A stretch of DNA of 64,000 nucleotides. Origin: Haliotis rufescens. Taxonomy: Eukaryota. Positions 12,974-57,068 of this stretch are shown one piece after another (the stretch's first letter is position 1; each line of letters starts with the position of its first letter). The notes below the pieces were generated by a model. It saw nothing but the letters and a program-made list of their open reading frames with translations, made no database searches and was not told the origin of the DNA. A program made the position numbers and the translations under genes. The stretch lies in NCBI RefSeq assembly GCF_023055435.1, contig NW_025964223.1, forward strand, positions 49,538,001-49,602,000, given 5' to 3'.

Positions 12974-13537
12974 TTAAGCCTTCTTTGGCTTGACTGCCTT
13001 CTTCTTGGGGGTCTTGACCTTCTTGGGTTTGGCTGCTGCCTTCTTGGGTGTCTTCGCCTTCTTGGGCTTGGCTGCAGCCTTCACCTTCTTTGGTGACTTA
13101 GCGGCCTTCTTAGCGGCTGTTTTGGGCTTCTTGGCAGCAGCTGGCTTCTTGACTTTCTTGGGGGATTTGGCAGCCTTCTTTGGTTTGGCAGCTGCCTTAG
13201 CCTTCTTGGGTTTTTCGTCTTTCTTTGCCTCGCCAAGACGGAATGATCCAGCGGCTCCAGTTCCCTTTGATTGCTTCAGTGCGCCGTTCTTGACTCCATT
13301 TTTCAAAGCAGTCTTGATGCGAGCATTGATGGCCACCTGGTTGTCACCAACCTTGTAGTTGGCCAAGATGTATTTCAGAACAGCCTGTCGGGAAGAACCA
13401 CCCCTCTCCTTCAGGGTTGAAATAGCTTTCTTGATCATCTCCAAATAGGTAGGATGTGCGGCAGCCTTCTTAGGCTTGGCAGCAGCCTTCTTCTTGGGAG
13501 TCTTGACAACAGCGGGGGCAGCAGCAGCATCAGCCAT
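12974..13537 (-). CDS. H1: Linker histone H1 (187 aa, T19A variant); promoter displaced by element A
   Basis: Intact ORF; only ~12 bp upstream of the inferred TSS remain before the LINE tail at 13610. Confidence 0.97.
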
Positions 13538-14123
13538 AGTGGTAAGTTTGAGTGGTAAAAATTCACGTCAGCTACGAGAGAAGCACAGAGAGCGAATGAC
13601 ACTTCCCCAGTCAGTCAGTCAGTTTCTTAGTTTTAACGACCCCTTCTAGCATAGCTAATTTCGGGGTCGGGATGGCCCCGTTCTAGTAGATAGGGAGAAT
13701 TTGAAAAATAAAGTCCTGATAATGACGTGAATAGTGGAGATATGCTAAGGTAGCCACCCAAAAAAATGTAAGGTTTTATGGGGCAGGGGAATCGGGTGGA
13801 GGGCTGGGTGGTTGGTGTGTTGGGACTTGGCGTAGCGATTTATTTGGAGTATTTATAGTTGGTTATGTTTTGTGTGGTTTGTGGAAGAATTAGAAATTAT
13901 TTGATAGTTTTCTTAAGTTGTTTTTGTGTCACGTGGGTTTTGTTAGGAAGGATAGTGGGCAGTGAGTAAATAACGATTTGGGATTTTAGGGTGTTTTTTG
14001 TGTGGTTTTTGTTGTTGTTGTTGTTGTTTTTTTGTGGGTTTTTTAAATGTCTTGGGGGAGGTGCGTTTGGTTTATATCCGTTAGGAAGTTGGATGGATGA
14101 TTGTGTCGCTTTTGTGGGTGGTG

Positions 14124-17100
14124 TTAGATTAGTTTTATGATATCTGTTTTTGTGATATAATTTATGATTGTTTTTTGTATTTGTGGGGGATTGTGGGGGG
14201 ATAGGAGTGTGTGGATAGTTTTTGTGTATTTTGCATCTAGTGTGTTGATGTACTGTATTCTGTGTGGTAAGTAGAGTGTGCACGTGTAGAATAAGTGCTG
14301 TATTGTTTGGGGAACTTGACATGTGGGGCAGAGCCCAGTGGAATGGCGAAAGTTTAATTTTGTGATGCCTACATATAGCCTGTTTAGTGCGGATTGTATA
14401 TTACGTGAGTTGCTAGAAAGATTTACTTTATTGATTTGTTTATTTATTGTTTTGTATGTCCATGTGGCGGGGGAGGTGTGCAGTTGTTTGAAGTTTTCTT
14501 GGGTTATTAGTTTATTTATGATGGATTTATATTCCTGTTTGCTGTATGTCAGTGGGTAATTAATATGTTTATTTTTTGCTGCTTGTTTGGCCGCTTGATC
14601 TGCCTTTTCGTTTCCCGTGATCCCAATATGTGAGGGTACCCATGCAATATTGATTTGTTTATTCTGTTCTGTTAATGTTTTCGTTAAGTGTAGTATTCGG
14701 TGTAGTAGATGTGGCCTGTTTGTGTAATTTCTGTTTTTAATTGATTGTATTGAGCTAAGTGAATCTGTGAGGATTAGAAGTTTGTTTTGTGTTATTGTCT
14801 CTGCCATTTTGAAGGCCATATAGATTGCTGTTTTTTCGGCGGTATGTATGGATAGGTGGTTTGGGATGCGTGCTGATGTGGTGGTTATGTTTGGTTTGGT
14901 TGTGTGTATTGCGAAGGCTGTTGTGTGGTCCGTCGGGTTGTGTGACCCGTCTGTGTAGATGTATGTCCAGTCTGGCCAGTGTTGTTGTATGTAATCCATT
15001 GCCATTATTTTTTGTTGGTGCTTGTTTGATGTTATTTTTGTGATGTTTGTTAGACCAGTGTCAGTATGAGGAGGTGGCAGGTGATATGAGTAGTCATGAA
15101 TGACAGGGGTGAGTTTTATGTTTTTAAGTTTGTATGTTTTGAGAAGGTGGTTTAGCCGAATGGTGAATGGGAGTCTTCGTCTTTTTTTGATTAGTTTGAC
15201 TTTCTGTCTTAGTGGTAGATTTTCTGTTGTTGTTATGAGGCTGCTTAACAATGGGTTTGTGCATGCTGTAGCCCAGTAGTTTAGTGTGATTTGTTTGCGT
15301 TTAAGGGGGAGAGCTATTTCCCCAGTGAGCTTTAAGAGAGATGTGAGTGCTGTGCCTGATATTGTACCTAGTGAGATTGATAGTGCTTTGTATTGTATTG
15401 AGTCTAATTTCTTGGAGTCTGTTTGTGTGAGTGCGTCGTATGCGGGTGCGGCGTATTCTAACTTGGGTCGGATGAGTGTTTTGTAGACAGTAAGTAGCGT
15501 GTGCTGGTCTGCTCCCCAGCTTGTTCCCCGTATGCTGCGCATTAAGTTAAGATCATGGTTGCATTTTGTGATGAGGTGTTTGATATGGGGTGTGTATGTT
15601 AGGTGTTGGTCGAGTATTAGGCCTAGAAATTTTGTTTGTGTGCTGTAGTTGATTTGGGAGTTATTTAGAGTTAAAGGTGGGGAGTAGTTTTGCATGTTAG
15701 GTGTTTTGAAGAGTATGGCTACTGTTTTGTCAGTATTGATTTTAAAACCCCATGTATTTGCCCATGTGTCAATATCATTGAGTTCTTGTTGGATATGTTC
15801 CTGCGCTGTACCTAGTGTTTTGTGTGAAGTCCAAAGTGATGCGTCGTCTGCAAATTTAGCTGGTTTGATTGTTGAGCGGATGTCTGTGAATATGTCATCG
15901 ATCATAAGATTGAAAAGTGTTGGAGAAAGGACACTGCCTTGAGGTGTACCGTTTTGGACGGGATGTGGGTCAGAAAGTGTGTTGTTTACTTTTACAGTTA
16001 TGGTACGATTTTTGAGAAAGTTGTGTATGAAGTTTAGCATACGTCCTTTAATATTTTTGTTTGACAATTTAGTGATTAGGCCGTCATTCCAGATCATGTC
16101 AAAGGCTTTTGAGAAATCGATGAATACAGCTAGGAGATAGTGTTTGTTAGCCTGGGCTACTCTGATGTCGTGTTCAATTCGAATGATGTGATCTAGGGTG
16201 GTTCTGTTTGGCGTGAACCCGCTCTGGTCTGCATGTAAGAGATTGTTTGAGTCTATGTGGTGTTGAAGTCTTTTCTTTATTATTGTTTCCATGATTTTGC
16301 ACATATTTGATGTGAGTGATATGGGTCTATATGATTCTGGGTTCTGTGGGGGTTTGTTTGGTTTTTTGATTGGGATTACCAGTGCTTGTTTCCATGTCGT
16401 AGGTATTTGAGCGGTATCCCAGACTGCATTGAGGAGTTTCAGTAGAAGAAGTTTTCCGTGCATGCTGAGTTTTTTTAGTAAAATATAAGTTAAGTCATCT
16501 GCTCCTGGAGCAGACGACGTGGTTTTGCTTTGGAGAGCGTGTGTCAGCTCGTGTATTGTTAAGGGTGCGTTGTAGGGTATATGGGCTTGGGGTGGTTGTG
16601 TGATGTAATCAGGTGTAGTGAGTAGTTTCTGTTGGAGTGAAGTGGGGTGGTTTGTGTTACTACTTATATGTTGGTAGTGTTGAGCTAATGTTTGCGCTTT
16701 TAATTTGTTATCAGTAAGGTTGTCTATTTTGTGGATGTGTGATGATTTTTTGGTACCGTTTATTGCCTTTAGTTTGCTCCACATGGCCTTTGAATTGTTT
16801 TTTGTTGTGTTTAAGGTACTGCAGAATTTTTCCCAGTGTTCTTTTCTCGTGTTTTTTATTAACATGTGTGTACTGTTTCGTAGTTGTTTTGCGTGTGGGA
16901 GTTCATGTGGATGGGTTTTTGCGCGTCTAAATGCTCGTTTTCTTTGTCTTCTAGCCTCTTTGATTTCTGGGGTCCACCAGGGAACTTTATTTCGTTGGGG
17001 GTTGGGGTTTGTTTTGGGGATACACTTAGTGGCTATAGTGATAATTTCTTTTGTTAATTTTTTGGAAAAGATTTCAGGGTCTGAATCTATAATTTTTAGG

Positions 17101-17933
17101 TTGTCAATTTGGTAGGTTAAGGTTTTGTATTTCTCCCAGTCTGCTTTTTTGTAGTTAAATTTTGGATCTCGTGAAGTTTGTTCTGATATATAACTTGAAC
17201 CAGTTTTGATATTTATTGAGATTGGGAAGTGATCACTACCCCATGGGTCGTCAAATACTTCCCATGTAGTTTTACTTGCCAGATTTGGGGTAGTTATTGT
17301 CAGATCTATTGCAGTGAGGAAGTTTTGGTTTTCCTGTGGGCTGTATCTGGTAGGGGATTTGTCATTTAAGATAATGAGATCATTTTGTTCTGCCCATGCG
17401 TATAGTAGATTACCAAATTTGTCTGTGTGGTCTCTAGTAGTCCAGCTATGGTGGTGCGCGTTTAAATCTCCTAACAATATAGTATTTTTTGTGATGTGCT
17501 TTGCTAGGATTTCAAGGTCTGTGTTGTCGAAAGGGTTTGTGGTTTGATGGTATATGTTTATCAGTGTTATATTAGTGTTTTCTGTCGAGATTGTGTACGC
17601 TTGTGTTTCTAAGTGAGGAGTGTCAATTGGAACTTTTTGGTAACCAAGTGTGTCGTGTATCAGTAGTGTTAGGCCACCATGTGGAGCGCTTGGATTTTTT
17701 GATGTGCGGTATTTGTTTATTGTGGTGTAATTTGGTATAGTGAATTGTTTGTTCTTTGGTATTTTAGACTCCTGAATGGCTATTATTTGTGGGTTGAGCT
17801 TATTTAGTTTTATTAGTGATTTAATTTCATGGGATTTAGATATGATGCCATTTGCATTCCACTGGATTATGTGCATGGTGAGTAGTAGCAGTAGGAGTGT
17901 GTGTATTTGCGTGTGTTTGTGGTGTCCCATCAT
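14124..17933 (-). CDS. Family A ORF2: APE endonuclease - reverse transcriptase - RNase H - CCHC zinc finger (1269 aa)
   Basis: QWNANG, IQE, GDLNAH, SDHFP (APE); YRPISLTS, DFSKAFD, GTPQGSVLSP, FADD (RT); YTDGS, AE, TDS, WVPSHIGITGNEKAD (RNase H); CPTC...H...C. Confidence 0.97.
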   Translation of the reverse strand: MMGHHKHTQIHTLLLLLLTMHIIQWNANGIISKSHEIKSLIKLNKLNPQIIAIQESKIPKNKQFTIPNYTTINKYRTSKNPSAPHGGLTLLIHDTLGYQKVPIDTPHLETQAYTISTENTNITLINIYHQTTNPFDNTDLEILAKHITKNTILLGDLNAHHHSWTTRDHTDKFGNLLYAWAEQNDLIILNDKSPTRYSPQENQNFLTAIDLTITTPNLASKTTWEVFDDPWGSDHFPISINIKTGSSYISEQTSRDPKFNYKKADWEKYKTLTYQIDNLKIIDSDPEIFSKKLTKEIITIATKCIPKTNPNPQRNKVPWWTPEIKEARRQRKRAFRRAKTHPHELPHAKQLRNSTHMLIKNTRKEHWEKFCSTLNTTKNNSKAMWSKLKAINGTKKSSHIHKIDNLTDNKLKAQTLAQHYQHISSNTNHPTSLQQKLLTTPDYITQPPQAHIPYNAPLTIHELTHALQSKTTSSAPGADDLTYILLKKLSMHGKLLLLKLLNAVWDTAQIPTTWKQALVIPIKKPNKPPQNPESYRPISLTSNMCKIMETIIKKRLQHHIDSNNLLHADQSGFTPNRTTLDHIIRIEHDIRVAQANKHYLLAVFIDFSKAFDMIWNDGLITKLSNKNIKGRMLNFIHNFLKNRTITVKVNNTLSDPHPVQNGTPQGSVLSPTLFNLMIDDIFTDIRSTIKPAKFADDASLWTSHKTLGTAQEHIQQELNDIDTWANTWGFKINTDKTVAILFKTPNMQNYSPPLTLNNSQINYSTQTKFLGLILDQHLTYTPHIKHLITKCNHDLNLMRSIRGTSWGADQHTLLTVYKTLIRPKLEYAAPAYDALTQTDSKKLDSIQYKALSISLGTISGTALTSLLKLTGEIALPLKRKQITLNYWATACTNPLLSSLITTTENLPLRQKVKLIKKRRRLPFTIRLNHLLKTYKLKNIKLTPVIHDYSYHLPPPHTDTGLTNITKITSNKHQQKIMAMDYIQQHWPDWTYIYTDGSHNPTDHTTAFAIHTTKPNITTTSARIPNHLSIHTAEKTAIYMAFKMAETITQNKLLILTDSLSSIQSIKNRNYTNRPHLLHRILHLTKTLTEQNKQINIAWVPSHIGITGNEKADQAAKQAAKNKHINYPLTYSKQEYKSIINKLITQENFKQLHTSPATWTYKTINKQINKVNLSSNSRNIQSALNRLYVGITKLNFRHSTGLCPTCQVPQTIQHLFYTCTLYLPHRIQYINTLDAKYTKTIHTLLSPHNPPQIQKTIINYITKTDIIKLI

Positions 17934-19648
17934 AGTTTGATTGATTTGACATTGTGTTTAAATTGCACTAGAGGGAGAGTGTATAGTGAGGTTTGGAGAA
18001 GATATTGGTGAATTGTTTCGATTGTGTTGTTGGGAGAGAGGGTTAGTGCAGTGATGAATTCTATGAGATTTTGTTGGATGTTTTGCAGTTTGATGATTGC
18101 ATCTTGTGCTGTGTGTACTGGTGGTGTTGTGTCTATTGAACGGAGGTTTGAGTTTGATTTAGGGGGTTTGGGGGCTACGTTTGTAGTGACTGGTGGTGGC
18201 CCTGGGTTTGGTTGTTCATGGCTGGCTGTGGTAGCTGGAGTCATGGTTTTGCCTTTTTTTTGTGTTTGCCTACGACCCCGTGACGACGCTAGACTAGCAG
18301 AGCGACCTGAGCTTGGTGCTCTTGGCTTGGGCATCCTGGGTTGGCGGCGGGGTGGTGGGTTTGGGGGTGGTGGGAGGTCGTCCTCGTTGTCATGTGAAGA
18401 TTCGTAGGATAAAGGTGGGGGGTCAAAATCCCTGTCGTACCAGTTGTATATTTTGGAGTTAGGGTTCCTTGCAGGGGCGGGGAGGTCAGATGCTGTAAGG
18501 TGTTTATTTATTGATAGGATTTGGTTTTGGCGGACTGGGCAGGTGTTTGAAAAGGCGGTATGATCATATTGGTCACAGTTTATACAGTAGGGTTGTTGAT
18601 TGCACTCAGTGCTGTTATGGAACTCGGAGCTGCATTTGGAACATCTGTCCAGGTTTTTACAATTTGATTGTGCGTGTCCAAAAAGGTGGCAGATGGTACA
18701 TTGGACTGGGTTTTTTCTCGTTTTGTGCACTTTGCAATATATTGATCCAAAAGTAATTTTGTCAGGAAGTTTGGTTCCTTTGAAAGTCAGGATGATAGTG
18801 GAAGTGTTTGTTGGGGGACCTTGTGGGTTTCGTCTGGTGATCCTTAGAAGATTAGTGATTTGAGGCTGGGTTTGGAGTTTATTTGATTCAATTACGTAAG
18901 CTTTGAGGTCGTGGTCAGACTCTGCAGGGTCGGTGTAAATGACCCCTTTTGTTTCAGAAAGCCAACGAGGAGTCTGCCACGACAGATTGATGCCATCTAT
19001 TGATGTTTGTTTCATTGCCACATTGAGGTCATATTGTAGGTTAAAGTTTATTTTGAAGGCTCTGCCGCAGCTGTTTATAAATTTGAATTTTAGATGGGCT
19101 TGCTTTAGTATAAGCCCAAATCTGTTTTTGGTGTACAGTGAAGTGAGTGGGGTGGGACCTGTATTGAATGCTAGAAGTACAAGATGTTGATTGTTGTTTG
19201 AGTTAGGTTGTGTACAACTCTGTCGTTTCTGTATCTTCGACTGCGTTTCAAGATCTTCGGGTGATTGTAGAGGGCGTTTTCCCCCAATGGCTGTGGCTGT
19301 GGCTAGGTTATTTAGTAGATTAGACTGGGAGCTGCGGGGGGTAGTCATTGAGATGCTGGGCGAAATTGGAGGGGATTTTCCGAAAGTGGGAGGGATGAGG
19401 TTAGTGGGATTACTTAGATCGAGTGGAGGGTACTGGGAACTAGTGGAGATTTTAGCGGGGGTTGAAGTGAGTGAAGGGGAAGGGGAAGTGGTGAAGGTAG
19501 ATGATAGTAGCTTACAGTCTTTTCTTGAGGGACGTTTGTCTTTCTGTTTGTCTAGGGTTGAAGTTGATATTGATGCTTGGGGTGTAGACAGCGGGCGGTC
19601 ATGTCGGTTTTCCTGCCGATCGAGTGATAGGGTCCGATTTGCCGCCAT
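17930..19648 (-). CDS. Family A ORF1, gag-like nucleic-acid-binding protein (572 aa)
   Basis: Three zinc knuckles CTICHLFGHAQSNC, CSKCSSEFHNSTEC, CINCDQYDHTAFSNTC; located upstream of ORF2. Confidence 0.93.
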   Translation of the reverse strand: MAANRTLSLDRQENRHDRPLSTPQASISTSTLDKQKDKRPSRKDCKLLSSTFTTSPSPSLTSTPAKISTSSQYPPLDLSNPTNLIPPTFGKSPPISPSISMTTPRSSQSNLLNNLATATAIGGKRPLQSPEDLETQSKIQKRQSCTQPNSNNNQHLVLLAFNTGPTPLTSLYTKNRFGLILKQAHLKFKFINSCGRAFKINFNLQYDLNVAMKQTSIDGINLSWQTPRWLSETKGVIYTDPAESDHDLKAYVIESNKLQTQPQITNLLRITRRNPQGPPTNTSTIILTFKGTKLPDKITFGSIYCKVHKTRKNPVQCTICHLFGHAQSNCKNLDRCSKCSSEFHNSTECNQQPYCINCDQYDHTAFSNTCPVRQNQILSINKHLTASDLPAPARNPNSKIYNWYDRDFDPPPLSYESSHDNEDDLPPPPNPPPRRQPRMPKPRAPSSGRSASLASSRGRRQTQKKGKTMTPATTASHEQPNPGPPPVTTNVAPKPPKSNSNLRSIDTTPPVHTAQDAIIKLQNIQQNLIEFITALTLSPNNTIETIHQYLLQTSLYTLPLVQFKHNVKSIKL

Positions 19649-19762
19649 GTTTGAAGTTCGAATGGTTGGCCTCCTTCAGCTTGATTTCAGCTGAGGCCAC
19701 CTGGCTGCGAGCGACAGGTCCGAGGGGAGGAGGGTTTCTTAAAGCAAAGCTGATTACTGCTT

Positions 19763-21968
19763 CTTACTTACTTACTTATATTAGGAGATTTTACGTGCGC
19801 TTTCCGACTGGAGCGTATTTCGCACACGGGCCCGGCCGGGCCATTTAGTGGTATAAAAGTGGTAGCGAGAGGAGTGCAACCAAGGAGGGGGGTTTAGTGG
19901 TTGCTTATATAAAGTTTTGAAATTTTGAGATTTGGAATACATGCCTTGGGGGAGTGGTTGGGACTAAGGGAGTGTGTGGGGGTGAGTTGATGTTTTTTGG
20001 ATGTTTAGTGTTGGTGGTTTAGTGAAGTTTTAAATACGGTTAATTAGTTCTGTTTTGGTTAGGTAAATGCCTAGGGCTTTGAAGTTTTCTATTTTATTTT
20101 GGGGGTTAAGGATTGCTTCTAAGGTAAGAGCGTTATTTGGATTTAGGTTGGTTTGTAATGTTGTACGTTGTGTGAGGTAGTGGGTGCAATGTAGTAGTAC
20201 GTGGTCTATTGTTTCTGGGTGAGTGCAGTGTGGGCACTTCCCGTTTGCGTGTTTTTTTAGTTTTAGAAGGTGGTTATTTAGTTTGGTGTGTCCTGTTTGG
20301 AGTTTGGTGATTATTCTATCGATTTTTTTGGAGGGATGGAGGATTTTTGGTTTGGTGAGGGGTTTTTTGAGGGTTTTTAGGATTTGGGTTTTTGTGTTTT
20401 GATAGAGGTTATGCCATTTTTGGGTGATTTTACGTTTGTTTATACTTTTGATTTCTGCTTTAGATATTGGTAGCTTAAGGCTTATGTCTGGTATTTTTAG
20501 GGATTGTTTTGCGGCTCTGTCTGCGTTTTCATTCCCGTAAATTCCTACGTGAGCTGGTATCCAGATAAGTTGTATGTTTTTGCCTGCCTCTGTTAGTTTG
20601 TTTACGCTTTTGAGAATTTGGTTTATTAATTTGGGGCGGTTTTTGGTGTTTTTGTTTTGGAGGGCCTGAAGTCCGCTTAGTGAGTCTGAGAGTATTAAGA
20701 TTTTTTTTTGGTTTTTGGTGTGATGGCTGTGGAGCGCCGTGGCGATACCCATGAGCTCTGCGGTGAATATAGATTGGTTGTTTGGGAGTCGGAAGGATTG
20801 AGTATTTTTGACTGGTTGGGCTATATGGACTCCGAAACCTGTGTGATTTGTGATCGGATCAGCGGATCCGTCTGTGTATATGTGACACCAATTTGGCCAT
20901 TTTTGATGGATGTAAGCTAGTGATGTGCTTTTAGCTAGGTTTGGGTCGGTTTGTTTGTTTATTGTGTTGGCTAGGGATGTGTCTATTTTGGGGATTTTAA
21001 GTTTTGGGGTGAATACGTTTGATTGTTTGCAGTTTTGTTGTTGGTTTCCTATTTGGTGTTCGTTATGGTAGTTTATTATTCGTTGGGATATTGGGGTGAG
21101 TAGAGGGTGTTTTCTAGTAAGTGCCTGGTTTTGGGGACGTATGTTTTGGTTTAGCATGTTTTGGAGAAGGGGGTTTGATTGAGATGCTGCCCAGAAGTTT
21201 AGTGTTAAGTGTTGTCTACGTAAATTTAGTGGCATTTCTCCTGTAAGGGCCTGAAGTGATGTGAGGGAGGTGCCATGTTGAGTACGTGTTACTAGTTTGA
21301 GGGCTTGATATTGTATTGAATCTAGTTTTTTGGTTAGGGTTTCGTTTAGGGTATCGTATATGGCACAGCCGTAGTCTAGTTTAGATCTGATTAGGGATGT
21401 GTAGAGGCTGAGGAGGGTATCTTTAGAGGCTCCCCAGTTGGAGCCGGTTAGGCATCTTAGTGTGTTTAGATCTTTGCTACATCTGGTGGTTAGGTTTTGG
21501 ACGTGAGCATCCCAGGAGAGATGCTCGTCGAAGATTAGACCTAGGAATTTAGTTTGCTTTTGAAATATGATTGGTTTATTGTTTAGTTTGAGGAGAGGGG
21601 AGGCCCGTCTCATATTTTTGTGTTTGAATACTATTCCTGTCGTTTTTTCGGAGTTTAGGGAGAAGCCCCATTTGTCTGCCCAGTTTTGTATTTTGTTTAG
21701 GGATTTTTGTAGTAAGTCCTGAGATGTTAAGATACTTTTGGAGCGGATCCATAGGGCTCCGTCATCCGCAAATTTTGAGGTGTTTATTTTGGGGGATAAG
21801 CCATCAAATAGGTCGTTTATCATTATGTTAAAAAGTGTGGGGCTAAGAATGCTGCCTTGAGGGGTGCCGTTTTCCAGGGGACACTGCTCTGACAAGGCCT
21901 GGTCTATACCCACTGTAATTTTGCGGTTTTGGAGGAAGCTTTGGATGTAGTTTACGATTTGACCTTTA
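19763..21968 (-). mobile_element. 5'-truncated LINE family B copy (B') nested in the 5' UTR of element A
   Basis: (TAAG)4 tail at 19763-19778; TSD TTACTGCTTCTT at 19754-19765 and 21966-21977; truncated within the RT domain. Confidence 0.94.
20030..21967 (-). pseudogene. Family B ORF2 3' fragment (C-terminal RT, complete RNase H, CCHC)
   Basis: KGQIV...GTPQGSILSP...FADD...YTDGS...WIPAHVGIYGNENAD...CPHC; lacks APE and the N-terminal RT. Confidence 0.9.
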
Positions 21969-30418: not shown

Positions 30419-31873
30419 GGTGAGCTTGTGTGAGAGAGTGTTTGTTGTGTTTGGGTTTTGTATGGGGGTATTTGTAGAGAGTGCCTGGGTGAGTTGTGTT
30501 TGACTGGTTTCTACTCTATATAGGGTTGGATTGGAGAGGTTGTTTGTTTAGGTTAAGAGATTTCTAAAGGTTTGTGGTTTTTAGTGGGCTTGGGTGTGAG
30601 ATACTTTGGCCTAGTGTTGAAAGGGTGTGTTGTGATAGTAACGGATTGGCTTGGGTGGTGGTTTGTTTTAAGCTAGAGGTTTAGGTGGTTTGGTGTTTTA
30701 AGTTGGCTTGGGTGTGAGTAATTTTAACCTAAATTGTATGGGTGTGTTGTGATAGTTACCGGGGTGTTGCTCTTGGGCTGGCTAGCAGTGGGAACTGTGC
30801 TGGCTTGGGAGGCTTTGCTGGGTGAGGTTGGCTTGGTGGCTGGATGGCTTGGGTTGCTTCGTAGGCTGAAGAGGTGTTGCTAGCTTGGAGTACAAACTGC
30901 GAAATGTGGCTGATAGCTGCACGCTTACAAGCGCGTGTGCTTTTTCGTGTATTTGTATCCGAATAATCACTTCTTAATCAAGGAAAGTTTCAATTTCAAC
31001 AATACAGTTAGGTAGTAAAAACATTTGGCTACATTTCGGTTACAATAGCAACGCTCACGGGTGAAGTTCAAAGCCACACGTGCTGTTTCCAATGAAGCGA
31101 CCCAGTCTAAAATGTAGACATCGCTACTTTCAAAAGCACATTTTTAGCCTTGAGACTCAAGTTTATGCATTTTAAACGTTGCCTGTCAATTCTCAATATA
31201 TCTAACTATGAAAGTAAAACACAACACTCATCAGTATTGCCTATGATAAGCTAGAACAAGCTTTCAAACAACGACAATGAAGCACGTTTTTCTGACGACT
31301 TCGCCATTTTGCAACAGAAAACATTTGACACTATATTTCTGGAGACATAATTTTGGTCACTTCAATTAGAGTTGAAACTAACTTTGTCATAACAAGTAAG
31401 TAACGGGGATTTTACTTTCAGGAAAACAGTCTAGTAAGACGAGGATCTCGGGACACAAGCAGCTAGGGCGCGAAGCCCCGAACAGTAACATATATACATT
31501 GGTGTTTAGATCACTCGATCGGTCGTCACAGATTAAGTCTTTTTGCCTGTCTTAATAGCACGATATTAGTAGGGGTCTTCGTCGTTTGGATGTTAATTTT
31601 ACCAGAACAATATAGGCTACCATCCATCAACGAAAAGTGAATGTTTCAGACGAAAGGCCGGATCGAGTGAGCGAGTGTGCCGGGCCTCGTGTTAAACAGT
31701 GATCACATGTTTTTAGAACGGCTAGATTTTAATCCCTGTAAATATACATCATAAATCAACAAACACAACATGTCTACTGAACCCGCTGAAAACGCGAGCA
31801 TGCTGTTTTCATGGCAATGTCTGTTTACCAATGTGTGGTGGCTATATGTAGCTAAAGTTTGCCAACAAGCATT

Positions 31874-33239: not shown

Positions 33240-33297
33240 GTCATTATTTGGGCTTTTAGTGTTTGGAGATTATGGATTTATTGTTTGTTTGGATTGT

Positions 33298-34962
33298 CTA
33301 TAGTCCTGCGGTTGCTGTTGAGTAGTTTGTAAGAAATTCCTTGTAACTTTGAGTGGTCAGTTTTAGGTTTAGGGCTACTTTGTGAAGATTTTTGGAGCTA
33401 GCCTCTGGGTTTATTTGTTTGAGCATGTAGGCCAGTAAGATTGTGATGTTGTTTAGTTTGGAAGTTATGGGGGTTTGGGGTTGAGATTGGATTTTGCGTT
33501 TGCGGTTTTTAAATTTTTTAGGTGCTGATCGGGTAATTTCAATTTCGTTTGCATTATCTTCAGTATCGTATTCGTCTTCGTCTATATTGCTTTGGTTTAT
33601 CTCCTCACTCTCCATGGGGGTTGTTTGTGTGTTTGGTAGTGCTTGCGTGTGCGTGCTGGGTATGTCCATGGGTTGAGTGCTGTTTGTGTCTTCGGGTAGT
33701 GCTTGCTCGTGTGTGGTTGTTGTTGCCCTGGTGGCTGCGGGTTGTATGGTGTTGGGTAGGGTTGAGGCGTGTGAGGTGCGGTTTGTTTTGCTTGCGGGTG
33801 TGGATGCAGCGAGTGGCTGTGGTGTGGCGAAGGTTTGGGGTTTGCGTGGGTGGTGGTAGAGTGTGGTTGTTGCTTGGGGGATTACCTTGGGGATGCCATC
33901 CCATGGGGATTGTAGGTGTCGGTCGTTGTTTGGTTGCGGTGTGGGTAAGAGTGGATTGTTTGTATGCTGTGTTTGTTTTCTTGTTTGGAGTTTGGCCGAG
34001 TCAATGTCGATGTGTTTGTTGGCCTGTTGGGTGAGGGTGTGTCTGTGGGGACATTTGTTGGAGAGAGAGGAGTGATTAGTTGCTTTACAATGTATGCACC
34101 AGGGAGCGCAGGCTCCTGGGCATTGGGTTTGAGCACAAGTCCTACATTTGGTTTTTTTAAATGTACAGGTGTTAGCAGTATGATTGTATTGTAAACAGTT
34201 TGAGCATTGTTTTACTTGCTTAATGTAGGGTTTAACCTCTAGTTTAGTAGAAGCGCCGAAAGAGATGAAGTTTGGGGCTTGAGGGTATTTTTCTGATTTC
34301 TGAAAGTTTATGATAACAATTGGTGTGTTTGTAGTTTTGCCGTTTCTGTTTGAAGTTATTCTCCTGGTGCTGGTTATTTTGGGTTGAAGAAGGGTATGGT
34401 TATTTAGGTTGGCTTCATCTGTGTAAAGTGCTAAGTCTTCATCTGATTCCCTAGGATTTACTCTGATTACGCCTCTAGTATAAAGTTGCCAATTTGGGGT
34501 TTGATGGGTTACTGTGAATTGGAAGATCTCCGTTACTTTTTTAGCTAAGTTTAGTGATTCTAGGTCCGGAAAGATAATTTGGTATCCTTTGTGTGCCTCT
34601 CTGATTTTGTTGTATTGGATTTTTTGTTTTTTAAACCAGAGTCCTACTTTGTTAATTGAGAGTTCCTTAGTTAGATTTATGACGGGGCCTGCCGCGCAGA
34701 AGTAGAGGGCGAAGGTGACCAGTGATGCTGCTTGTGATGTGAATGAGGTGTTGGAAGAGTCCAGCTTCCGTTTTTTAGGGTTTGTGGTGGCTGCGGTCGA
34801 TTCGGAAGTTTTTGGAGGGTTGACTGTGGTTTTGTTTCCGAAATCGTGTGGTATGAGGGTCTCGGGTGTCCGATCGGAGGTGTTGTGCGCCTCCGATGGT
34901 GTAGGAGTGTCAGTCTGGTGTATGTCTGCCTGGGTGACTGTGACTGTGCGTGTGTCGGACAT
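33298..34962 (-). CDS. Family B ORF1 (554 aa, intact)
   Basis: Identical protein to 28754-30418; the track's extra MQQQQQQ N-terminus comes from element C's 3' end plus B 5' UTR. Confidence 0.88.
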   Translation of the reverse strand: MSDTRTVTVTQADIHQTDTPTPSEAHNTSDRTPETLIPHDFGNKTTVNPPKTSESTAATTNPKKRKLDSSNTSFTSQAASLVTFALYFCAAGPVINLTKELSINKVGLWFKKQKIQYNKIREAHKGYQIIFPDLESLNLAKKVTEIFQFTVTHQTPNWQLYTRGVIRVNPRESDEDLALYTDEANLNNHTLLQPKITSTRRITSNRNGKTTNTPIVIINFQKSEKYPQAPNFISFGASTKLEVKPYIKQVKQCSNCLQYNHTANTCTFKKTKCRTCAQTQCPGACAPWCIHCKATNHSSLSNKCPHRHTLTQQANKHIDIDSAKLQTRKQTQHTNNPLLPTPQPNNDRHLQSPWDGIPKVIPQATTTLYHHPRKPQTFATPQPLAASTPASKTNRTSHASTLPNTIQPAATRATTTTHEQALPEDTNSTQPMDIPSTHTQALPNTQTTPMESEEINQSNIDEDEYDTEDNANEIEITRSAPKKFKNRKRKIQSQPQTPITSKLNNITILLAYMLKQINPEASSKNLHKVALNLKLTTQSYKEFLTNYSTATAGL

Positions 34963-35046
34963 GGTGAGCTTGTGTGAGAGAGTGTTTGTTGTGTTTGGGT
35001 TTTGTATGGGGGTATTTGTAGAGAGTGCCTGGGTGAGTTGTGTTTG

Positions 35047-38000
35047 TTGTTGTTGTTGTTGCATTAGGTGTTTAAGAGGTCGCCTTCTGCCTAGGCAATT
35101 TCGGCTGACCTGTCCCTCTTTGGGACTCCTGTGTGTGAGAAGGGTTCACATATCTATTGTGAGTTCGGTGTTCACATAATTTCTGTTTTTGCATTGATAT
35201 GATTTCTATTTTCTTATATTGATATGATTTCATTTTTATCCTTGGCTGCTCTGTTTATATACGTTCGAGCAGCTGTCCATCTCTCAGAAATAGAGTTAGT
35301 TTGGCCTTCGCTATTGCATCTCTTGGCTTTAGGAGATCTATGACAGATAGCGGATCTAACTGCAATTCTTGTTTTAACCTAGCCCGGGCCGGGGCATGGT
35401 CTTGACATTCTAGTAACAGGTGGTCAATGGTTTCAGCCTGATTGCAAGATGAACAAACCTTGTCATAGTGCTTTTTGTGACCAAGTCTGAGGCGTGAGAT
35501 AGCAGTTTCAATTTTCCTTTCATTTGAGTATGAGTTTGGCTTTTGTTGGACCTTGGGTTGAATTTTGTATAGCCATCTGCCGATCTTACTTGCGTCCCAT
35601 TGGGTTTGCCATCTTTTTGCTATGGAGGCTTTGATTTTGCTTTTTATCTCTAGTTTACTAAAGGGAATAGGCTGTATATCCGCTTTGTCTAGAGCTAGCT
35701 TCGCCAGTGAGTCTGCTTTTTCATTTCCATGAATATCTATGTGAGAGGGGATCCAACACAGCTCCACCTGTTGCCCTTGGTCCGATAGTTTTGTATATTC
35801 GTATAGAATATTGTTGACTGTGTTTGGCCTGGAGTTTGAGTTTCTTCCACTGATGGCCTGAAGTGCACTTAGCGAGTCTGATAGGACGACTGCCTTTGCT
35901 TCCGGGAGTTCCGGTATGAGTTTGAGTGCATGATGAATTGCCTCCAATTCAGCCGTGAATACTGACTGACCATCGGGCAAGCGAACTGAATGTGCTTGGG
36001 GTTTGGAGCTGTGGATATGGATCCCGTAACCAGCACTGTTGTTGATAGGATTCTTGGATCCATCAGTGTATATATGGGCCCAGCTGTCCCAGGTAGTTTG
36101 AATTTTAGTGATAGCTACTGAACGTAGTAGGGTTGGGTTTTCTCTTTTAGTGACTTCTGATGTTAAAGCAGTGTCAACTTTGGGAGTTTGTAAAGTCCAG
36201 GGAGGGTGTAACCCTTTGTAGTGACTTTCTGGAGGCTGAATGTCATCGCAATTGTGACTTCGAATGAGTTCACGTACTAATATCCCAGATGGCTTTAGTG
36301 AGGGATTTTTTCGAGCTAGGGCCTCATCTCGAGCGTTTTTGTCTTGCCATATCTTTTTAACCAAAGGGTTTGATGTTCGTCCCCAGAACGATAATATTGC
36401 CTGCTCTCGTCTTAGTTTCAATGGGAGTTCTCCCGTTTCTACTTGTAGTGCTTCTAGTGAGGTGCCTGTCGCTGCGCCTGTGGCCAGTATTAGGGCTTTG
36501 TATTGTATTCTGTCTAGTCGCCTCAAGACAGTATTTGATGCTGAGTGAAAAGCCTCACAACCATAGTCAATTTTTGATCTGATAAGAGCTTTGTAGAGGT
36601 CCAGCTGAGTGTCCCTCGATGTGCCCCAAGATGTGCCTGAAATTGCCCGTAATACGTTCAGGTCTTTTTGACATCTGTTTTCCACATATTCGATATGCTT
36701 GCGCCAAGTGAGGTGTTGATCAAGGATAACTCCAAGAAATATTGCAGATTTTTCGAATTTGATAGGTTTGCCTTTTATGGAGACACGGGGTATCATAGCA
36801 TCTTTCCCCCGGCGTTTGAATAGAACTCCAACAGTTTTTTCACTTGAAAGGGTGAATCCCCATTTATTGCACCATTGATCTACTCCGTCCAGGGCTGACT
36901 GGAGTTTTTTTCTGATTTGTGAGATATCTCTGTGCTTTACCCATATTGCTCCGTCATCAGCGAACTTAGAAGTTTGGGTAGGAGAGTTGACATGGTCAAA
37001 AAGATCATTGATCATGATATTAAACAGGGTTGGGCTTATAATGCTGCCTTGTGGCGTGCCATTGTCCAGTGCCATAGGATCCGATCGATTGTTCCCTATT
37101 TTAACTGAAAGCGACCTGTCTTGCAGGAAGCTGTCTATGAAGTTTGCCATGTTCCCTTCAACTCCATTTTGTGATAGTTTTGAGAGGAGTCCGTCATGCC
37201 ATACCATGTCGAAGGCTTTGCTGAAGTCCAGAAATACTGCGGCTAGGTATTGTCTGTTTAATTGGGCTTTTTTTATTTCATTTTCCAGTCTTAGAATATG
37301 ATCTAGACACGAGTGTCCCTTCCTGAAGCCACTTTGGTCAGGTTTTATGTGGTTGCCAGTTTCAAGATGATGCATGAGCCTTTTTGTAACCATGGCTTCC
37401 ATGGCTTTGCACATGTTTGAGGTGAGTGAGATCGGTCGATAAGAGTTTGGTAGGGCTTCGTCTTTCCCTTGCTTTAGCAGCGGGATAACCGCAGCATGTT
37501 TCCATGCTTTTGGGACTTCTCCTTTGGACCATATCGTGTTATACAACTCAGTGAGTAAGCCTTTGGTTTGATCAGGTAGGTTTTTCAATATCTCGTAGCT
37601 GGTTGTGTCAAGACCAGGTGCTGTGCCTTTTCTATGTTGTATCGCATCATCAAACTCTGTCACAGTAAATGGTATATTGTATACCAGATGCTTGCTTTGC
37701 GGCCGTTTTGAGATCTTAGGCATAAGCATTTTTGCCTGTTTGAATTCTTCGCTGCAATTTGTGTTGCTGCTGACAGATGAGAAGTGCTCAGCTAGAATGT
37801 TGGCCTTTTCTTTGACTGTATGGGCGTTGGCTAACTTGGGAATTTTTGTGGGTTTACGCTTACCCCTGATTGCGTGTATTTTGCTCCAGACTGTTTTAGC
37901 ATTTGTTTTCTCATTAAGGGATTTGCAGAAGGTCTGCCATGACTCTTTTTTAGAATCGTCTATGAGTTGTCTTACTTTCGTCCTGGCTGCTCGGACTTGG

Positions 38001-38534
38001 GCAAAGGCTGATTTATCCCTTTTTGACCTATTTAGGGCTTTCTTTCTCACTCTCCTAGCTTTTGCTATTTCCCTGTTCCACCATGGTACCGGCGTTTTGC
38101 CAGTTTTGTGGTCTTTTTTTGGAATTGATTTTTCAGCTGCGGCAATAATTGCTGAGGTGAGATTTTGGCAAAAAAGATCAGGATCATCCGAGGCAATTTC
38201 TGAGGACTTGAATGATACACATTCCTTCCTGAATTTAGGCCAGTCAGCCTTTGCATAGTCCCATGTGGGCTGAGGATTGGGCTGTTCCTCTAATTGTGGT
38301 GGGCTACCTATGTAGGTGAGTATAGGAAGGTGATCGCTTCCCCAAGTGTCGTCATGGACTTGCCATTGGCAATGTGAGGCGAGGTTTTTGGTGGCAATTG
38401 TGAGATCAATTGAACTCCACGTGTTGTGGACTTGGTCATAACGCGTGTGACTGCCGTTGTTCAGAGTTATGAGATTGTCGTCCTCAACCCATTTCTCTAC
38501 CATTTTGCCATATTTGCCATATTTGCATGAATCA
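35047..38534 (-). mobile_element. LINE family C, I-group, 5'-truncated, nested in the 5' UTR of B
   Basis: (CAA)n tail at 35047-35061; TSD TTGTGTTTG at 35038-35046 and 38535-38543. Confidence 0.93.
35255..38503 (-). pseudogene. Family C ORF2, missing the N-terminal part of APE (open for 1082 aa: RT, RNase H, CCHC)
   Basis: Starts mid-APE (SDHLP retained); YRPISLTS, FADD, YTDGS, WIPSHIDIHGNEKAD, CSSC...H...C. Confidence 0.92.
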
Positions 38535-39923
38535 TTGTGTTTGACTGGTTTGACTGGTTTCTACTCTATATAGGGTTGGATTGGAGAGGTTGTTTGTTTA
38601 GGTTAAGAGATTTCTAAAGGTTTGTGGTTTTTAGTGGGCTTGGGTGTGAGATACTTTGGCCTAGTGTTGAAAGGGTGTGTTGTGATAGTAACGGATTGGC
38701 TTGGGTGGTGGTTTGTTTTAAGCTAGAGGTTTAGGTGGTTTGGTGTTTTAAGTTGGCTTGGGTGTGAGTAATTTTAACCTAAATTGTATGGGTGTGTTGT
38801 GATAGTTACCGGGGTGTTGCTCTTGGGCTGGCTAGCAGTGGGAACTGTGCTGGCTTGGGAGGCTTTGCTGGGTGAGGTTGGCTTGGTGGCTGGATGGCTT
38901 GGGTTGCTTCGTAGGCTGAAGAGGTGTTGCTAGCTTGGAGTACAAACTGCGAAATGTGGCTGATAGCTGCACGCTTACAAGCGCGTGTGCTTTTTCGTGT
39001 ATTTGTATCCGAATAATCACTTCTTAATCAAGGAAAGTTTCAATTTCAACAATACAGTTAGGTAGTAAAAACATTTGGCTACATTTCGGTTACAATAGCA
39101 ACGCTCACGGGTGAAGTTCAAAGCCACACGTGCTGTTTCCAATGAAGCGACCCAGTCTAAAATGTAGACATCGCTACTTTCAAAAGCACATTTTTAGCCT
39201 TGAGACTCAAGTTTATGCATTTTAAACGTTGCCTGTCAATTCTCAATATATCTAACTATGAAAGTAAAACACAACACTCATCAGTATTGCCTATGATAAG
39301 CTAGAACAAGCTTTCAAACAACGACAATGAAGCACGTTTTTCTGACGACTTCGCCATTTTGCAACAGAAAACATTTGACACTATATTTCTGGAGACATAA
39401 TTTTGGTCACTTCAATTAGAGTTGAAACTAACTTTGTCATAACAAGTAAGTAACGGGGATTTTACTTTCAGGAAAACAGTCTAGTAAGACGAGGATCTCG
39501 GGACACAAGCAGCTAGGGCGCGAAGCCCCGAACAGTAACATATATACATTGGTGTTTAGATCACTCGATCGGTCGTCACAGATTAAGTCTTTTTGCCTGT
39601 CTTAATAGCACGATATTAGTAGGGGTCTTCGTCGTTTGGATGTTAATTTTACCAGAACAATATAGGCTACCATCCATCAACGAAAAGTGAATGTTTCAGA
39701 CGAAAGGCCGGATCGAGTGAGCGAGTGTGCCGGGCCTCGTGTTAAACAGTGATCACATGTTTTTAGAACGGCTAGATTTTAATCCCTGTAAATATACATC
39801 ATAAATCAACAAACACAACATGTCTACTGAACCCGCTGAAAACGCGAGCATGCTGTTTTCATGGCAATGTCTGTTTACCAATGTGTGGTGGCTATATGTA
39901 GCTAAAGTTTGCCAACAAGCATT

Positions 39924-41849: not shown

Positions 41850-42435
41850 AGTGGTAAGTTTGAGTGGTAAAAATTCACGTCAGCTACGAGAGAAGCACAG
41901 AGAGCGAATGACACTTCCCCAGTCAGTCAGTCAGTTTCTTAGTTTTAACGACCCCTTCTAGCATAGCTAATTTCGGGGTCGGGATGGCCCCGTTCTAGTA
42001 GATAGGGAGAATTTGAAAAATAAAGTCCTGATAATGACGTGAATAGTGGAGATATGCTAAGGTAGCCACCCAAAAAAATGTAAGGTTTTATGGGGCAGGG
42101 GAATCGGGTGGAGGGCTGGGTGGTTGGTGTGTTGGGACTTGGCGTAGCGATTTATTTGGAGTATTTATAGTTGGTTATGTTTTGTGTGGTTTGTGGAAGA
42201 ATTAGAAATTATTTGATAGTTTTCTTAAGTTGTTTTTGTGTCACGTGGGTTTTGTTAGGAAGGATAGTGGGCAGTGAGTAAATAACGATTTGGGATTTTA
42301 GGGTGTTTTTTGTGTGGTTTTTGTTGTTGTTGTTGTTGTTTTTTTGTGGGTTTTTTAAATGTCTTGGGGGAGGTGCGTTTGGTTTATATCCGTTAGGAAG
42401 TTGGATGGATGATTGTGTCGCTTTTGTGGGTGGTG

Positions 42436-45400
42436 TTAGATTAGTTTTATGATATCTGTTTTTGTGACATAATTTATGATTGTTTTTTGTATTTGTGGGG
42501 GATTGTGGGGGGATAGGAGTGTGTGGATAGTTTTTGTGTATTTTGCATCTAGTGTGTTGATGTACTGTATTCTGTGTGGTAAGTAGAGTGTGCACGTGTA
42601 GAATAAGTGCTGTATTGTTTGGGGAACTTGACATGTGGGGCAGAGCCCAGTGGAATGGCGAAAGTTTAATTTTGTGATGCCTACATATAGCCTGTTTAGT
42701 GCGGATTGTATATTACGTGAGTTGCTAGAAAGATTTACTTTATTGATTTGTTTATTTATTGTTTTGTATGTCCATGTGGCGGGGGAGGTGTGCAGTTGTT
42801 TGAAGTTTTCTTGGGTTATTAGTTTATTTATGATGGATTTATATTCCTGTTTGCTGTATGTCAGTGGGTAATTAATATGTTTATTTTTTGCTGCTTGTTT
42901 GGCCGCTTGATCTGCCTTTTCGTTTCCCGTGATCCCAATATGTGAGGGTACCCATGCAATATTGATTTGTTTATTCTGTTCTGTTAATGTTTTCGTTAAG
43001 TGTAGTATTCGGTGTAGTAGATGTGGCCTGTTTGTGTAATTTCTGTTTTTAATTGATTGTATTGAGCTAAGTGAATCTGTGAGGATTAGAAGTTTGTTTT
43101 GTGTTATTGTCTCTGCCATTTTGAAGGCCATATAGATTGCTGTTTTTTCGGCGGTATGTATGGATAGGTGGTTTGGGATGCGTGCTGATGTGGTGGTTAT
43201 GTTTGGTTTGGTTGTGTGTATTGCGAAGGCTGTTGTGTGGTCCGTCGGGTTGTGTGACCCGTCTGTGTAGATGTATGTCCAGTCTGGCCAGTGTTGTTGT
43301 ATGTAATCCATTGCCATTATTTTTTGTTGGTGCTTGTTTGATGTTATTTTTGTGATGTTTGTTAGACCAGTGTCAGTATGAGGAGGTGGCAGGTGATATG
43401 AGTAGTCATGAATGACAGGGGTGAGTTTTATGTTTTTAAGTTTGTATGTTTTGAGAAGGTGGTTTAGCCGAATGGTGAATGGGAGTCTTCGTCTTTTTTT
43501 GATTAGTTTGACTTTCTGTCTTAGTGGTAGATTTTCTGTTGTTGTTATGAGGCTGCTTAACAATGGGTTTGTGCATGCTGTAGCCCAGTAGTTTAGTGTG
43601 ATTTGTTTGCGTTTAAGGGGGAGAGCTATTTCCCCAGTGAGCTTTAAGAGAGATGTGAGTGCTGTGCCTGATATTGTACCTAGTGAGATTGATAGTGCTT
43701 TGTATTGTATTGAGTCTAATTTCTTGGAGTCTGTTTGTGTGAGTGCGTCGTATGCGGGTGCGGCGTATTCTAACTTGGGTCGGATGAGTGTTTTGTAGAC
43801 AGTAAGTAGCGTGTGCTGGTCTGCTCCCCAGCTTGTTCCCCGTATGCTGCGCATTAAGTTAAGATCATGGTTGCATTTTGTGATGAGGTGTTTGATATGG
43901 GGTGTGTATGTTAGGTGTTGGTCGAGTATTAGGCCTAGAAATTTTGTTTGTGTGCTGTAGTTGATTTGGGAGTTATTTAGAGTTAAAGGTGGGGAGTAGT
44001 TTTGCATGTTAGGTGTTTTGAAGAGTATGGCTACTGTTTTGTCAGTATTGATTTTAAAACCCCATGTATTTGCCCATGTGTCAATATCATTGAGTTCTTG
44101 TTGGATATGTTCCTGCGCTGTACCTAGTGTTTTGTGTGAAGTCCAAAGTGATGCGTCGTCTGCAAATTTAGCTGGTTTGATTGTTGAGCGGATGTCTGTG
44201 AATATGTCATCGATCATAAGATTGAAAAGTGTTGGAGAAAGGACACTGCCTTGAGGTGTACCGTTTTGGACGGGATGTGGGTCAGAAAGTGTGTTGTTTA
44301 CTTTTACAGTTATGGTACGATTTTTGAGAAAGTTGTGTATGAAGTTTAGCATACGTCCTTTAATATTTTTGTTTGACAATTTAGTGATTAGGCCGTCATT
44401 CCAGATCATGTCAAAGGCTTTTGAGAAATCGATGAATACAGCTAGGAGATAGTGTTTGTTAGCCTGGGCTACTCTGATGTCGTGTTCAATTCGAATGATG
44501 TGATCTAGGGTGGTTCTGTTTGGCGTGAACCCGCTCTGGTCTGCATGTAAGAGATTGTTTGAGTCTATGTGGTGTTGAAGTCTTTTCTTTATTATTGTTT
44601 CCATGATTTTGCACATATTTGATGTGAGTGATATGGGTCTATATGATTCTGGGTTCTGTGGGGGTTTGTTTGGTTTTTTGATTGGGATTACCAGTGCTTG
44701 TTTCCATGTCGTAGGTATTTGAGCGGTATCCCAGACTGCATTGAGGAGTTTCAGTAGAAGAAGTTTTCCGTGCATGCTGAGTTTTTTTAGTAAAATATAA
44801 GTTAAGTCATCTGCTCCTGGAGCAGACGACGTGGTTTTGCTTTGGAGAGCGTGTGTCAGCTCGTGTATTGTTAAGGGTGCGTTGTAGGGTATATGGGCTT
44901 GGGGTGGTTGTGTGATGTAATCAGGTGTAGTGAGTAGTTTCTGTTGGAGTGAAGTGGGGTGGTTTGTGTTACTACTTATATGTTGGTAGTGTTGAGCTAA
45001 TGTTTGCGCTTTTAATTTGTTATCAGTAAGGTTGTCTATTTTGTGGATGTGTGATGATTTTTTGGTACCGTTTATTGCCTTTAGTTTGCTCCACATGGCC
45101 TTTGAATTGTTTTTTGTTGTGTTTAAGGTACTGCAGAATTTTTCCCAGTGTTCTTTTCTCGTGTTTTTTATTAACATGTGTGTACTGTTTCGTAGTTGTT
45201 TTGCGTGTGGGAGTTCATGTGGATGGGTTTTTGCGCGTCTAAATGCTCGTTTTCTTTGTCTTCTAGCCTCTTTGATTTCTGGGGTCCACCAGGGAACTTT
45301 ATTTCGTTGGGGGTTGGGGTTTGTTTTGGGGATACACTTAGTGGCTATAGTGATAATTTCTTTTGTTAATTTTTTGGAAAAGATTTCAGGGTCTGAATCT

Positions 45401-47960: not shown

Positions 47961-48074
47961 GTTTGAAGTTCGAATGGTTGGCCTCCTTCAGCTTGATTTC
48001 AGCTGAGGCCACCTGGCTGCGAGCGACAGGTCCGAGGGGAGGAGGGTTTCTTAAAGCAAAGCTGATTACTGCTT

Positions 48075-57015: not shown

Positions 57016-57068
57016 TATTTGGGCTTTTAGTGTTTGGAGATTATGGATTTATTGTTTGTTTGGATTGT

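Follow-up and report, generated by a model that had tools for sequence, protein, structure and literature searches.

The question raised by this locus is why two clearly different retrotransposon families should end at almost the same base of a repeated gene unit. The locus lies in a 64,000-nucleotide stretch of the Haliotis rufescens genome (contig NW_025964223.1, positions 49,538,001 to 49,602,000, forward strand), referred to here as the window. Based on unit-to-window alignment, which gave clean breakpoints, the window is part of a tandem array with a unit length of 3006 bp, and within each unit a linker histone H1 gene and a 5S rRNA gene diverge. Two families of retrotransposons without long terminal repeats (non-LTR elements), or long interspersed nuclear elements (LINEs), designated A and B, are inserted immediately upstream of the putative H1 start with their 3' junctions 9 bp apart. 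The original prediction had taken them for a lineage specific for this start. Our explanation, to which we give a probability of roughly two in three, is that these two related families land at gene starts, those of genes which are present in many copies and are heavily transcribed. It is carried by the junctions of the copies, their recurrence, the differing ages of the insertions, and their orientation and clustering.

Insertions at the H1 start

Breakpoints and junction sequences placed the two 3' ends at unit positions 1581 (A, window 13609) and 1572 (B, window 25022). The (ACTG)n tail of A meets the unit about 12 nt upstream of the adenine in the motif TCATTC, and the (TAAG)n tail of B meets it about 3 nt upstream of the same adenine, in agreement with the distances first proposed. 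Both elements lie on the H1 strand, as was also predicted. The H1 start is placed by this motif, a putative initiator at unit 1571-1566 (minus strand) which is found 60 nt before the H1 ATG. In the reference unit (1..3006), the H1 coding sequence for a linker histone of 187 aa covers positions 946-1509 and the histone 3' stem-loop positions 862-907, both on the minus strand, and the 5S rRNA gene covers 2608-2726 on the plus strand. An interspersed H1/5S array without core histones has been seen in Mytilus mussels by fibre fluorescence in situ hybridization (PMC4106214).

The A region is composite. Family A proper covers 13610-19763 (minus strand, tail at 13610-13625), while its first 19 nt (GATCAGC followed by AAGAAGCAGTAA) are located at 21966-21984 on the same strand and are separated from the remainder by a 5'-truncated copy of family B (B', 19766-21965, minus strand). 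The whole is bounded by a 56-bp target-site duplication (TSD) of unit 1526-1581 which has one mismatch and includes the initiator. The downstream copy of the duplication (13554-13609, minus strand) contains the H1 initiator and most of the 5' untranslated region (5'UTR) and is followed by the H1 coding sequence at 12974-13537. The upstream copy (21985-22040, minus strand) sets the H1 promoter, the initiator and a 44-nt leader directly before the 5' end of A. The nested copy B' is 97% identical to B, retains part of the reverse transcriptase, RNase H and CCHC regions together with a (TAAG)n tail, and is bounded by its own 12-bp TSD (AAGAAGCAGTAA) at 19754-19765 and 21966-21977. It is situated 7 nt from the 5' end of A; counted from the upstream one of the two H1 start copies, it is 52-63 nt downstream. 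It had correctly been recognized as a third independent event. Element B itself (25023-30904, minus strand, 5882 bp) has unit 1572 as its 3' flank and unit 1639 as its 5' flank; unit 1573-1638 is replaced, which corresponds to a 66-bp target deletion removing the proximal H1 promoter.

The array was mapped by exact-pattern searches of the 1.33-Gb assembly using five short landmark patterns and four junction patterns. The landmarks revealed about 111 units on one contig (C445, 49.27-49.83 Mb) in a single orientation, with 104-111 matches per landmark; among the matches listed (up to 100 each), all were on C445. A search with the 3'UTR of A identified four copies at 98-100% identity, all inside the array, and about 10 older copies at 75-95% identity which are dispersed and have unrelated flanks. 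The pattern search likewise found exactly four (ACTG)n tails before the H1 5'UTR. In all four the junction reads (ACTG)n|GGGGAAGTGTCATTC, one of them carrying an extra ACTG in the tail.

These four young copies represent three structures with different 5' junctions. The first is full length, is present as two copies (segmental duplicates) and has unit 1526 as its 5' flank. The second is 3443 bp long and, based on its match end and the landmark position, its 5' flank is about unit 1602, a 20-bp target deletion. The third is 1911 bp long, with 3 filler bases and a 5' flank at unit 1571, an 11-bp duplication. Outgroup-polarised private substitutions over 1.9 kb numbered 0 (window copy), 5 and 8, which is poorly compatible with equal ages (P=0.005), and the flanking units were 3-4 times more divergent than the A elements (Fisher P=0.012 and 0.0005). 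A fourth 5' junction was detected in run X15, a data set labelled as another organism, where, in one contig of depth about 10, the 5' region of A is joined directly to unit 1566 (...GTGTCATTC), the nested B copy and the 40-nt leader stretch both being absent. Taken together, the three structures, the unequal branch lengths, the flank divergence and the X15 junction indicate repeated entry over time at one nucleotide, and they support at least three separate landings of A at this H1-upstream position; young copies were found nowhere else in the 1.33 Gb. For the 56-bp duplication another make-up was considered, a duplication of 11 bp extended by 45 nt of H1 leader that the RNA had carried; it was dropped, since the X15 copy joins A to TCATTC directly.

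A chimeric-looking A copy was also noted at the left edge of the array (C445:49268124-49271668). Toward the 5' end it matches the window copy at 98% identity and adjoins an H1 promoter, while the 3' part matches at 95% and is flanked by sequence from outside the array, which suggests recombination of an array copy with an outside copy.

One objection is that there was no targeting, i.e. that one chance insertion each of A and B was spread by unequal crossing-over and then trimmed, the clustering being amplification. The array certainly does duplicate insertions. A 28.3-kb segmental duplication (window 12029-33239 versus 40323-61500) includes A with its nested B copy as well as B; the duplicate of A with its nested copy lies at 41922-50296 (minus strand, offset 28312 bp) and that of B at 53338-59219 (minus strand, offset 28315 bp), with one difference across 1.9 kb of A compared. 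The array also yields deletion derivatives. The segment at 33240-38954 (minus strand) has the 5' junction of B and is 100% identical to it, and is therefore the same B insertion by descent. In this segment the 5'UTR of B holds, 407 nt in, a 5'-truncated element of a third family, C (about 35047-38547, (CAA)n tail), and a deletion fuses the start-codon region of the second open reading frame (ORF2) of B to the H1 stop codon (unit 953) via the microhomology AGGC. The remaining copies in the window are thus array duplications, as had been supposed. The A copies, however, are poorly accounted for in this manner. The truncated ones resemble ordinary 5'-truncated insertions (with the 11-bp duplication and the 20-bp target deletion), and a single-event origin would need two deletions, each beginning within 76 bp of the 5' end of A. 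The unequal branch lengths (0, 5, 8) and the different A junction in the X15 data set likewise argue against amplification of one event. Chance insertion followed by spread is consequently considered most improbable.

Most insertions are found in the left part of the array (C445:49.354-49.51 Mb), and the right part (49.51-49.83 Mb) is nearly clean. The left part has unit variants which are about 2% divergent from the right part, e.g. CTTATT versus CTTCTT at unit 1705, with units of about 2950 bp.

Both coding regions of A in the window are open, ORF2 (14124-17933, minus strand) encoding 1269 aa with an apurinic-type endonuclease, reverse transcriptase, RNase H and C-terminal CCHC, and ORF1 (17930-19648, minus strand) encoding 572 aa with CCHC knuckles; the 5'UTR covers 19649-19763 (minus strand). 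In B, ORF1 is located at 28754-30418 and ORF2 at 25575-28700 (both minus strand), the latter shortened in RNase H by a 343-bp internal deletion. The missing 343 bp (25586-25593 versus 20334-20676) are retained in the nested copy and in the array copies L037, L038 and L052.

Family B at 5S and small nuclear RNA genes

Collecting the genomic copies and reading their flanks was the check originally proposed. It bore out the idea of an H1-specific lineage for the young A copies, all of which lie at the one H1-upstream nucleotide, and went against it for older A and for B, most sampled copies of which are found elsewhere, at many different flanks. A first look at B gave 1578 candidate matches genome-wide, including dozens at 98-99% identity on many contigs. 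B is not H1-specific, but its flanks are still far from random. Within the array, a second, independent and near-full-length B copy was found at H1 +32 (unit 1538), and one B copy is located in the spacer at unit 735 in the orientation opposite to H1.

The statement that none of the elements hits 5S holds inside the window and fails array-wide. The pattern (TAAG)2 followed by the 5S start within 16 nt was found at six places, in each of which the B tail ends 9 nt upstream of 5S and the gene is intact. Five of the six junctions read (TAAG)n|ACAAGCATT|GTCTACGG, and in the sixth a single base of the 9-nt spacer differs. The tail phase varies, one junction being TAAGT|ACAAGC and the others TAAG|ACAAGC, with one TAAG|ATAAGC. 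At the five places where both flanking landmarks are present the insert sizes are 3.07, 4.26, 6.24, 14.8 and 15.5 kb; the sixth is a +3.9 kb interval in which two landmarks upstream of 5S were lost. Four of the 5S junctions are letter-identical, as amplification of a chance insertion would predict. B is nevertheless present at H1 -3, H1 +32, 5S -9, U4 and U5, different sites which are not copies of one event.

The U4 and U5 sites were identified with Rfam. In a U4/U6 array a B tail ends 9-11 nt upstream of a U4 gene, and in a U5 array a further B copy is found within one of the genes, at about +15. CATT occurs five or six bases after the B junction at 5S, U4 and U5 (P ~7e-4). In these arrays (L033/L039) U4 and U6 alternate with a repeat of about 2.5 kb, and U5 is tandem with a period of about 631 bp; each carries one B insertion. 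The U6 genes in L033 have no insertion.

Six independent B tails adjoin, at 0-25 nt, the 5' end of another coding element, and one B copy and one A-family copy adjoin the same TCAGTT-headed repeat. Such head-to-tail LINE junctions may represent insertion at LINE heads or template switching. Head-to-tail LINE arrays were seen at six loci (L046, L047, L053, L055, L056 and L057; contigs C1, C35, C583 and C586), where tails of B, and of a related family ending in CCTAA-like 5-mers, adjoin the 5' ends of other elements. One LINE head reads ...CGGCTTGGACACTCGCCC, with the ORF start MRDLSRSLPRELV, and another reads ...GGGAGGTCTAAAT (L049, L050, L054).

To map insertions across the array, the unit was split into intervals by the five landmarks and inserts larger than 1 kb were counted over 49.354-49.800 Mb. 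About 20 insertions were found: six in 219 bp around the H1 5'UTR and start, six in 152 bp around the 5S start, and about eight in the remaining 88%. The two gene-start regions, which together make up 371 bp or 12.3% of the unit, therefore hold about 12 of the 20 (binomial P=6e-7), which strengthens the non-random pull to gene starts proposed from the window. At least 10 B copies were seen in the array, against 0.4 expected at the genome-wide density. All 13 of the 13 gene-start insertions are co-oriented with the gene. Two of the inserts matched none of the tail patterns searched for. For the insert at 49393290 (+4.4 kb, H1 start interval), no (TAAG)2 was found in the 30 nt before the GACGTGAATTTTTACCAC stretch, which belongs to the H1 5'UTR, and neither it nor the insert at 49398779 (+8.6 kb, 5S start interval) matched (ACTG)2 within 30 nt upstream of the CTCTCTGTGCTTCTCTCGTAGC stretch; the latter insert matched neither H1 5'UTR tail pattern, nor (TAAG)2 within 16 nt before the 5S start.

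Clustering of this kind might reflect an accessibility hot spot only, nucleosome-free and heavily transcribed promoters being easier to nick, with any active LINE accumulating there and no targeting encoded by the element. At least three families (A, B and C, together with the inserts at 49393290 and 49398779) are indeed at or near starts, and B occupies several H1 positions (-3, +32 and +52). Accessibility does not, however, predict reuse of a single nucleotide (three to four times by A, up to six times by B), nor the 13/13 sense orientation, nor the restriction of young A copies to this array within 1.33 Gb. It is regarded as quite improbable as the sole cause.

How the sites may be found

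If A and B do use gene starts as landing sites, A would make its first-strand nick on the template strand at a single position, between unit 1582 and 1581, which is some 12 nt upstream of the H1 initiator. The second-strand break would be variable, giving an 11-, 16- or 56-bp duplication or a 20-bp deletion. Any duplication of at least 13 bp, reaching the adenine at unit 1569, would copy the start nucleotide. A full-length A with such a duplication would then stand directly behind an intact H1 promoter and start, and the H1 gene downstream would keep its start and lose its promoter. The arrangement in the window suggests such a capture of the H1 promoter by A. B lands repeatedly 9 nt upstream of 5S. 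Its less frequent landing places are two positions around the H1 start (-3 and +32), the upstream flank of U4, the interior of U5, and the 5' ends of other LINEs, among them A; each of these insertions has the orientation of its target gene.

Three candidate means of finding the site may be considered: the endonuclease may prefer certain sequences, the element may recognise the initiation complex or the melted promoter, or read-through RNA may pair with the target. The N5-CATT pattern favours the first. It is weakened by the observation that H1, 5S, U4, U5 and the LINE heads otherwise have no evident sequence in common.

The second candidate is favoured by the -12 to -3 and -9 positions, which lie between a TATA-like element and +1, by the involvement of two polymerases and by the strict sense orientation; it is weakened by two sites, U5 +15 and H1 +32. 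Under this tentative and rather doubtful proposal, what A and B recognise would be an assembled initiation complex or a melted promoter and no particular DNA sequence, and they would nick the template strand between the TATA-like element and +1 (H1 -12 to -3, 5S -9, U4 about -9) at genes of both RNA polymerase II and III. If true, these would be the first LINEs in animals whose integration is aimed at transcription start sites, and A would couple such targeting to systematic capture of the promoter of a host protein gene by means of an initiator-copying TSD.

The third candidate, if combined with an unspecific endonuclease, amounts to a rival explanation. Transcripts of a copy that by chance stands before H1 or 5S would continue into the gene behind it, and this 3' extension would pair with nicked DNA in other units, prime reverse transcription there and so reproduce the parental junction. 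Pairing by read-through RNA is known in principle for R1 and SART1/TRAS1. The 3' junctions identical to the nucleotide, combined with 5' junctions scattered over 76 bp, are what homing of this kind would leave, as is the finding that only A copies of H1-resident descent are at H1 while older relatives are dispersed; the different targets of B also share no strong sequence motif. The variation in tail length and phase (an extra ACTG in one A copy, TAAGT|ACAAGC at one 5S gene) is better explained by fresh priming than by copying of a parental junction, and the first arrivals at five different gene starts, all in the sense orientation, would be left unexplained. No read-through RNA was observed in the runs, which consisted of contigs or small-RNA libraries. 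Homing by read-through RNA is therefore judged unlikely.

Several points weigh against landing at gene starts as a property of both families. Older A-family copies and most B copies are at other flanks, neither family as a whole being strictly site-specific, and the great majority of copies lie in the target only for A at 98% identity or more. Among the off-target sites of A, two of 10 have at least six of eight matches to GTCATTCG (P=0.12), which is weak. The motif TCAKTY within 12 nt of the junction was found at 3/11 A sites and 3/24 B sites, a nominally significant result in which several of the sites are heads of repeated elements. In a search for repeat U4 insertions only one U4 gene was found to carry B, and no tRNA gene was found beside any sampled copy at 35 loci. 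The independence of four of the six 5S junctions was judged by insert size only, and internal deletions following duplication could give the same sizes. Concerted evolution could have inflated the divergence of the flanks. The H1 start is placed by a motif, and transcription of A from the H1 promoter is a prediction from the sequence arrangement. Finally, head-to-tail junctions between LINEs can also arise through template switching by reverse transcriptase.

Relationship to other elements

The domain order endonuclease, reverse transcriptase, RNase H and CCHC, with short-repeat tails, had been predicted and was confirmed. In A, ORF2 matches the Pfam domains Exo_endo_phos (23-235), RVT_1 (522-773) and RNase_H (991-1119), and B and C have the same order. 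A CX2CX8HX4C motif is found close to the C-terminus of A, C and the nested B copy. CCHC knuckles are indeed present in ORF1, though strict CX2CX4HX4C counts gave two in A and one in B, not the three originally proposed. The 3' tails are short repeats and not poly(A), namely (ACTG)n in A, (TAAG)n in B and (CAA)n in C. The ORF2 proteins of the three families are 40-46% identical, indicating that they are families of one group. A homologue search revealed no close or named relative, only unnamed proteins at 39% identity or less. At the domain level the assignment of A, B and C to the I group (I/Nimb-like) was confirmed, domain architecture being the sole basis of this probable placement. I factor and Nimb-type LINEs share with A and B this domain order, CCHC knuckles in ORF1, short-repeat 3' tails and duplications of 10-16 bp. 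To our knowledge, they have been described as dispersed and without a gene-start target.

Target specificity among elements with an apurinic-type endonuclease is a feature of the R1 and Tx1 clades (PMC4640811), as the original prediction had stated. The R1 clade (R1, R6, R7, TRAS, SART, Waldo) resembles A and B in its apurinic-type endonuclease, a multicopy target entered at one nucleotide and in one orientation, a precise 3' junction with a variable 5' end, CCHC knuckles in ORF1 and a C-terminal CCHC in ORF2. R1-clade targets are ribosomal DNA (rDNA), telomeric repeats or microsatellites, whereas those of A and B are the promoter of a protein-coding gene and the 5S upstream flank. B also differs from this clade in its many targets, and A in its dispersed older relatives. 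We know of no R1-clade element with an RNase H domain; A and B have one.

The Tx1 clade (Mutsu in 5S, Keno in U2, Dewa in tRNA) is similar to B in that small RNA genes arranged in tandem are its home. In zebrafish, Mutsu is linked to 5S rDNA and sits inside 5S (PMC5340908). Tx1-clade elements use a specific sequence inside the gene, whereas B spares the 5S gene, ending 9 nt upstream of it. Tx1-clade elements are L1-like, are not known to carry RNase H and belong to a different clade from A and B.

A short fixed distance to genes transcribed by RNA polymerase III is kept by the Dictyostelium non-LTR element TRE5-A, which integrates about 50 bp upstream of tRNA genes via TFIIIB, and by Ty3 at polymerase III starts (PMC3159450, PMC5391098, PMC5911963). 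In those elements the distance is set by the transcription complex (TFIIIB) and not by sequence. The distance of TRE5-A from tRNA genes is about 50 bp; that of B from 5S is 9 nt, with no tRNA gene beside the sampled copies. Unlike TRE5-A and Ty3, A and B are also present at RNA polymerase II starts (H1, U4). SLACS/CZAR/CRE and NeSL insert in the sense orientation a few nucleotides from the start of the spliced-leader RNA gene and are transcribed from the host promoter. This use of a host promoter resembles the promoter capture proposed for A. Those elements differ in having a restriction-like endonuclease, in belonging to early-branching clades, and in occupying a single target inside the transcribed leader.

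The known niches of target-specific LINEs are rDNA, telomeric repeats, small RNA genes, microsatellites and other transposons. No report was found in the literature of a LINE targeting the promoter of a histone gene, or of any other protein-coding gene, or the 5S upstream flank, which would make A a target-specific LINE with a new class of target and B a family that prefers gene starts of several kinds. Transposons go unmentioned in a 2026 survey of how histone genes are organised in more than 250 species.

If the recurrence holds, the H1/5S array offers a natural system in which a single genome presents about 100 identical targets, some filled and some empty, with insertions of different ages. 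It could be used to separate sequence-directed from transcription-complex-directed integration in an animal LINE. It would also illustrate a route by which a LINE may borrow a strong host promoter, disabling one copy of a multicopy gene only. A new specificity is also of practical interest, since work is under way to use site-specific LINEs as templates for inserting genes at chosen targets.

Two further flanks of B copies were noted. At C46:19.52-19.64 Mb (four loci, L043-L045 and L060) there is a tandem array with an 1831-bp period, the unit of which contains a B copy's 3' end and, after it, ...AAACTTACCTGATCATGCA; no RNA family was recognized by Rfam in this array or in other flanks examined. 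At L058:2122-2168, with no histone reading frame in between, a histone-type 3' stem-loop is located 250 bp downstream of a B copy.

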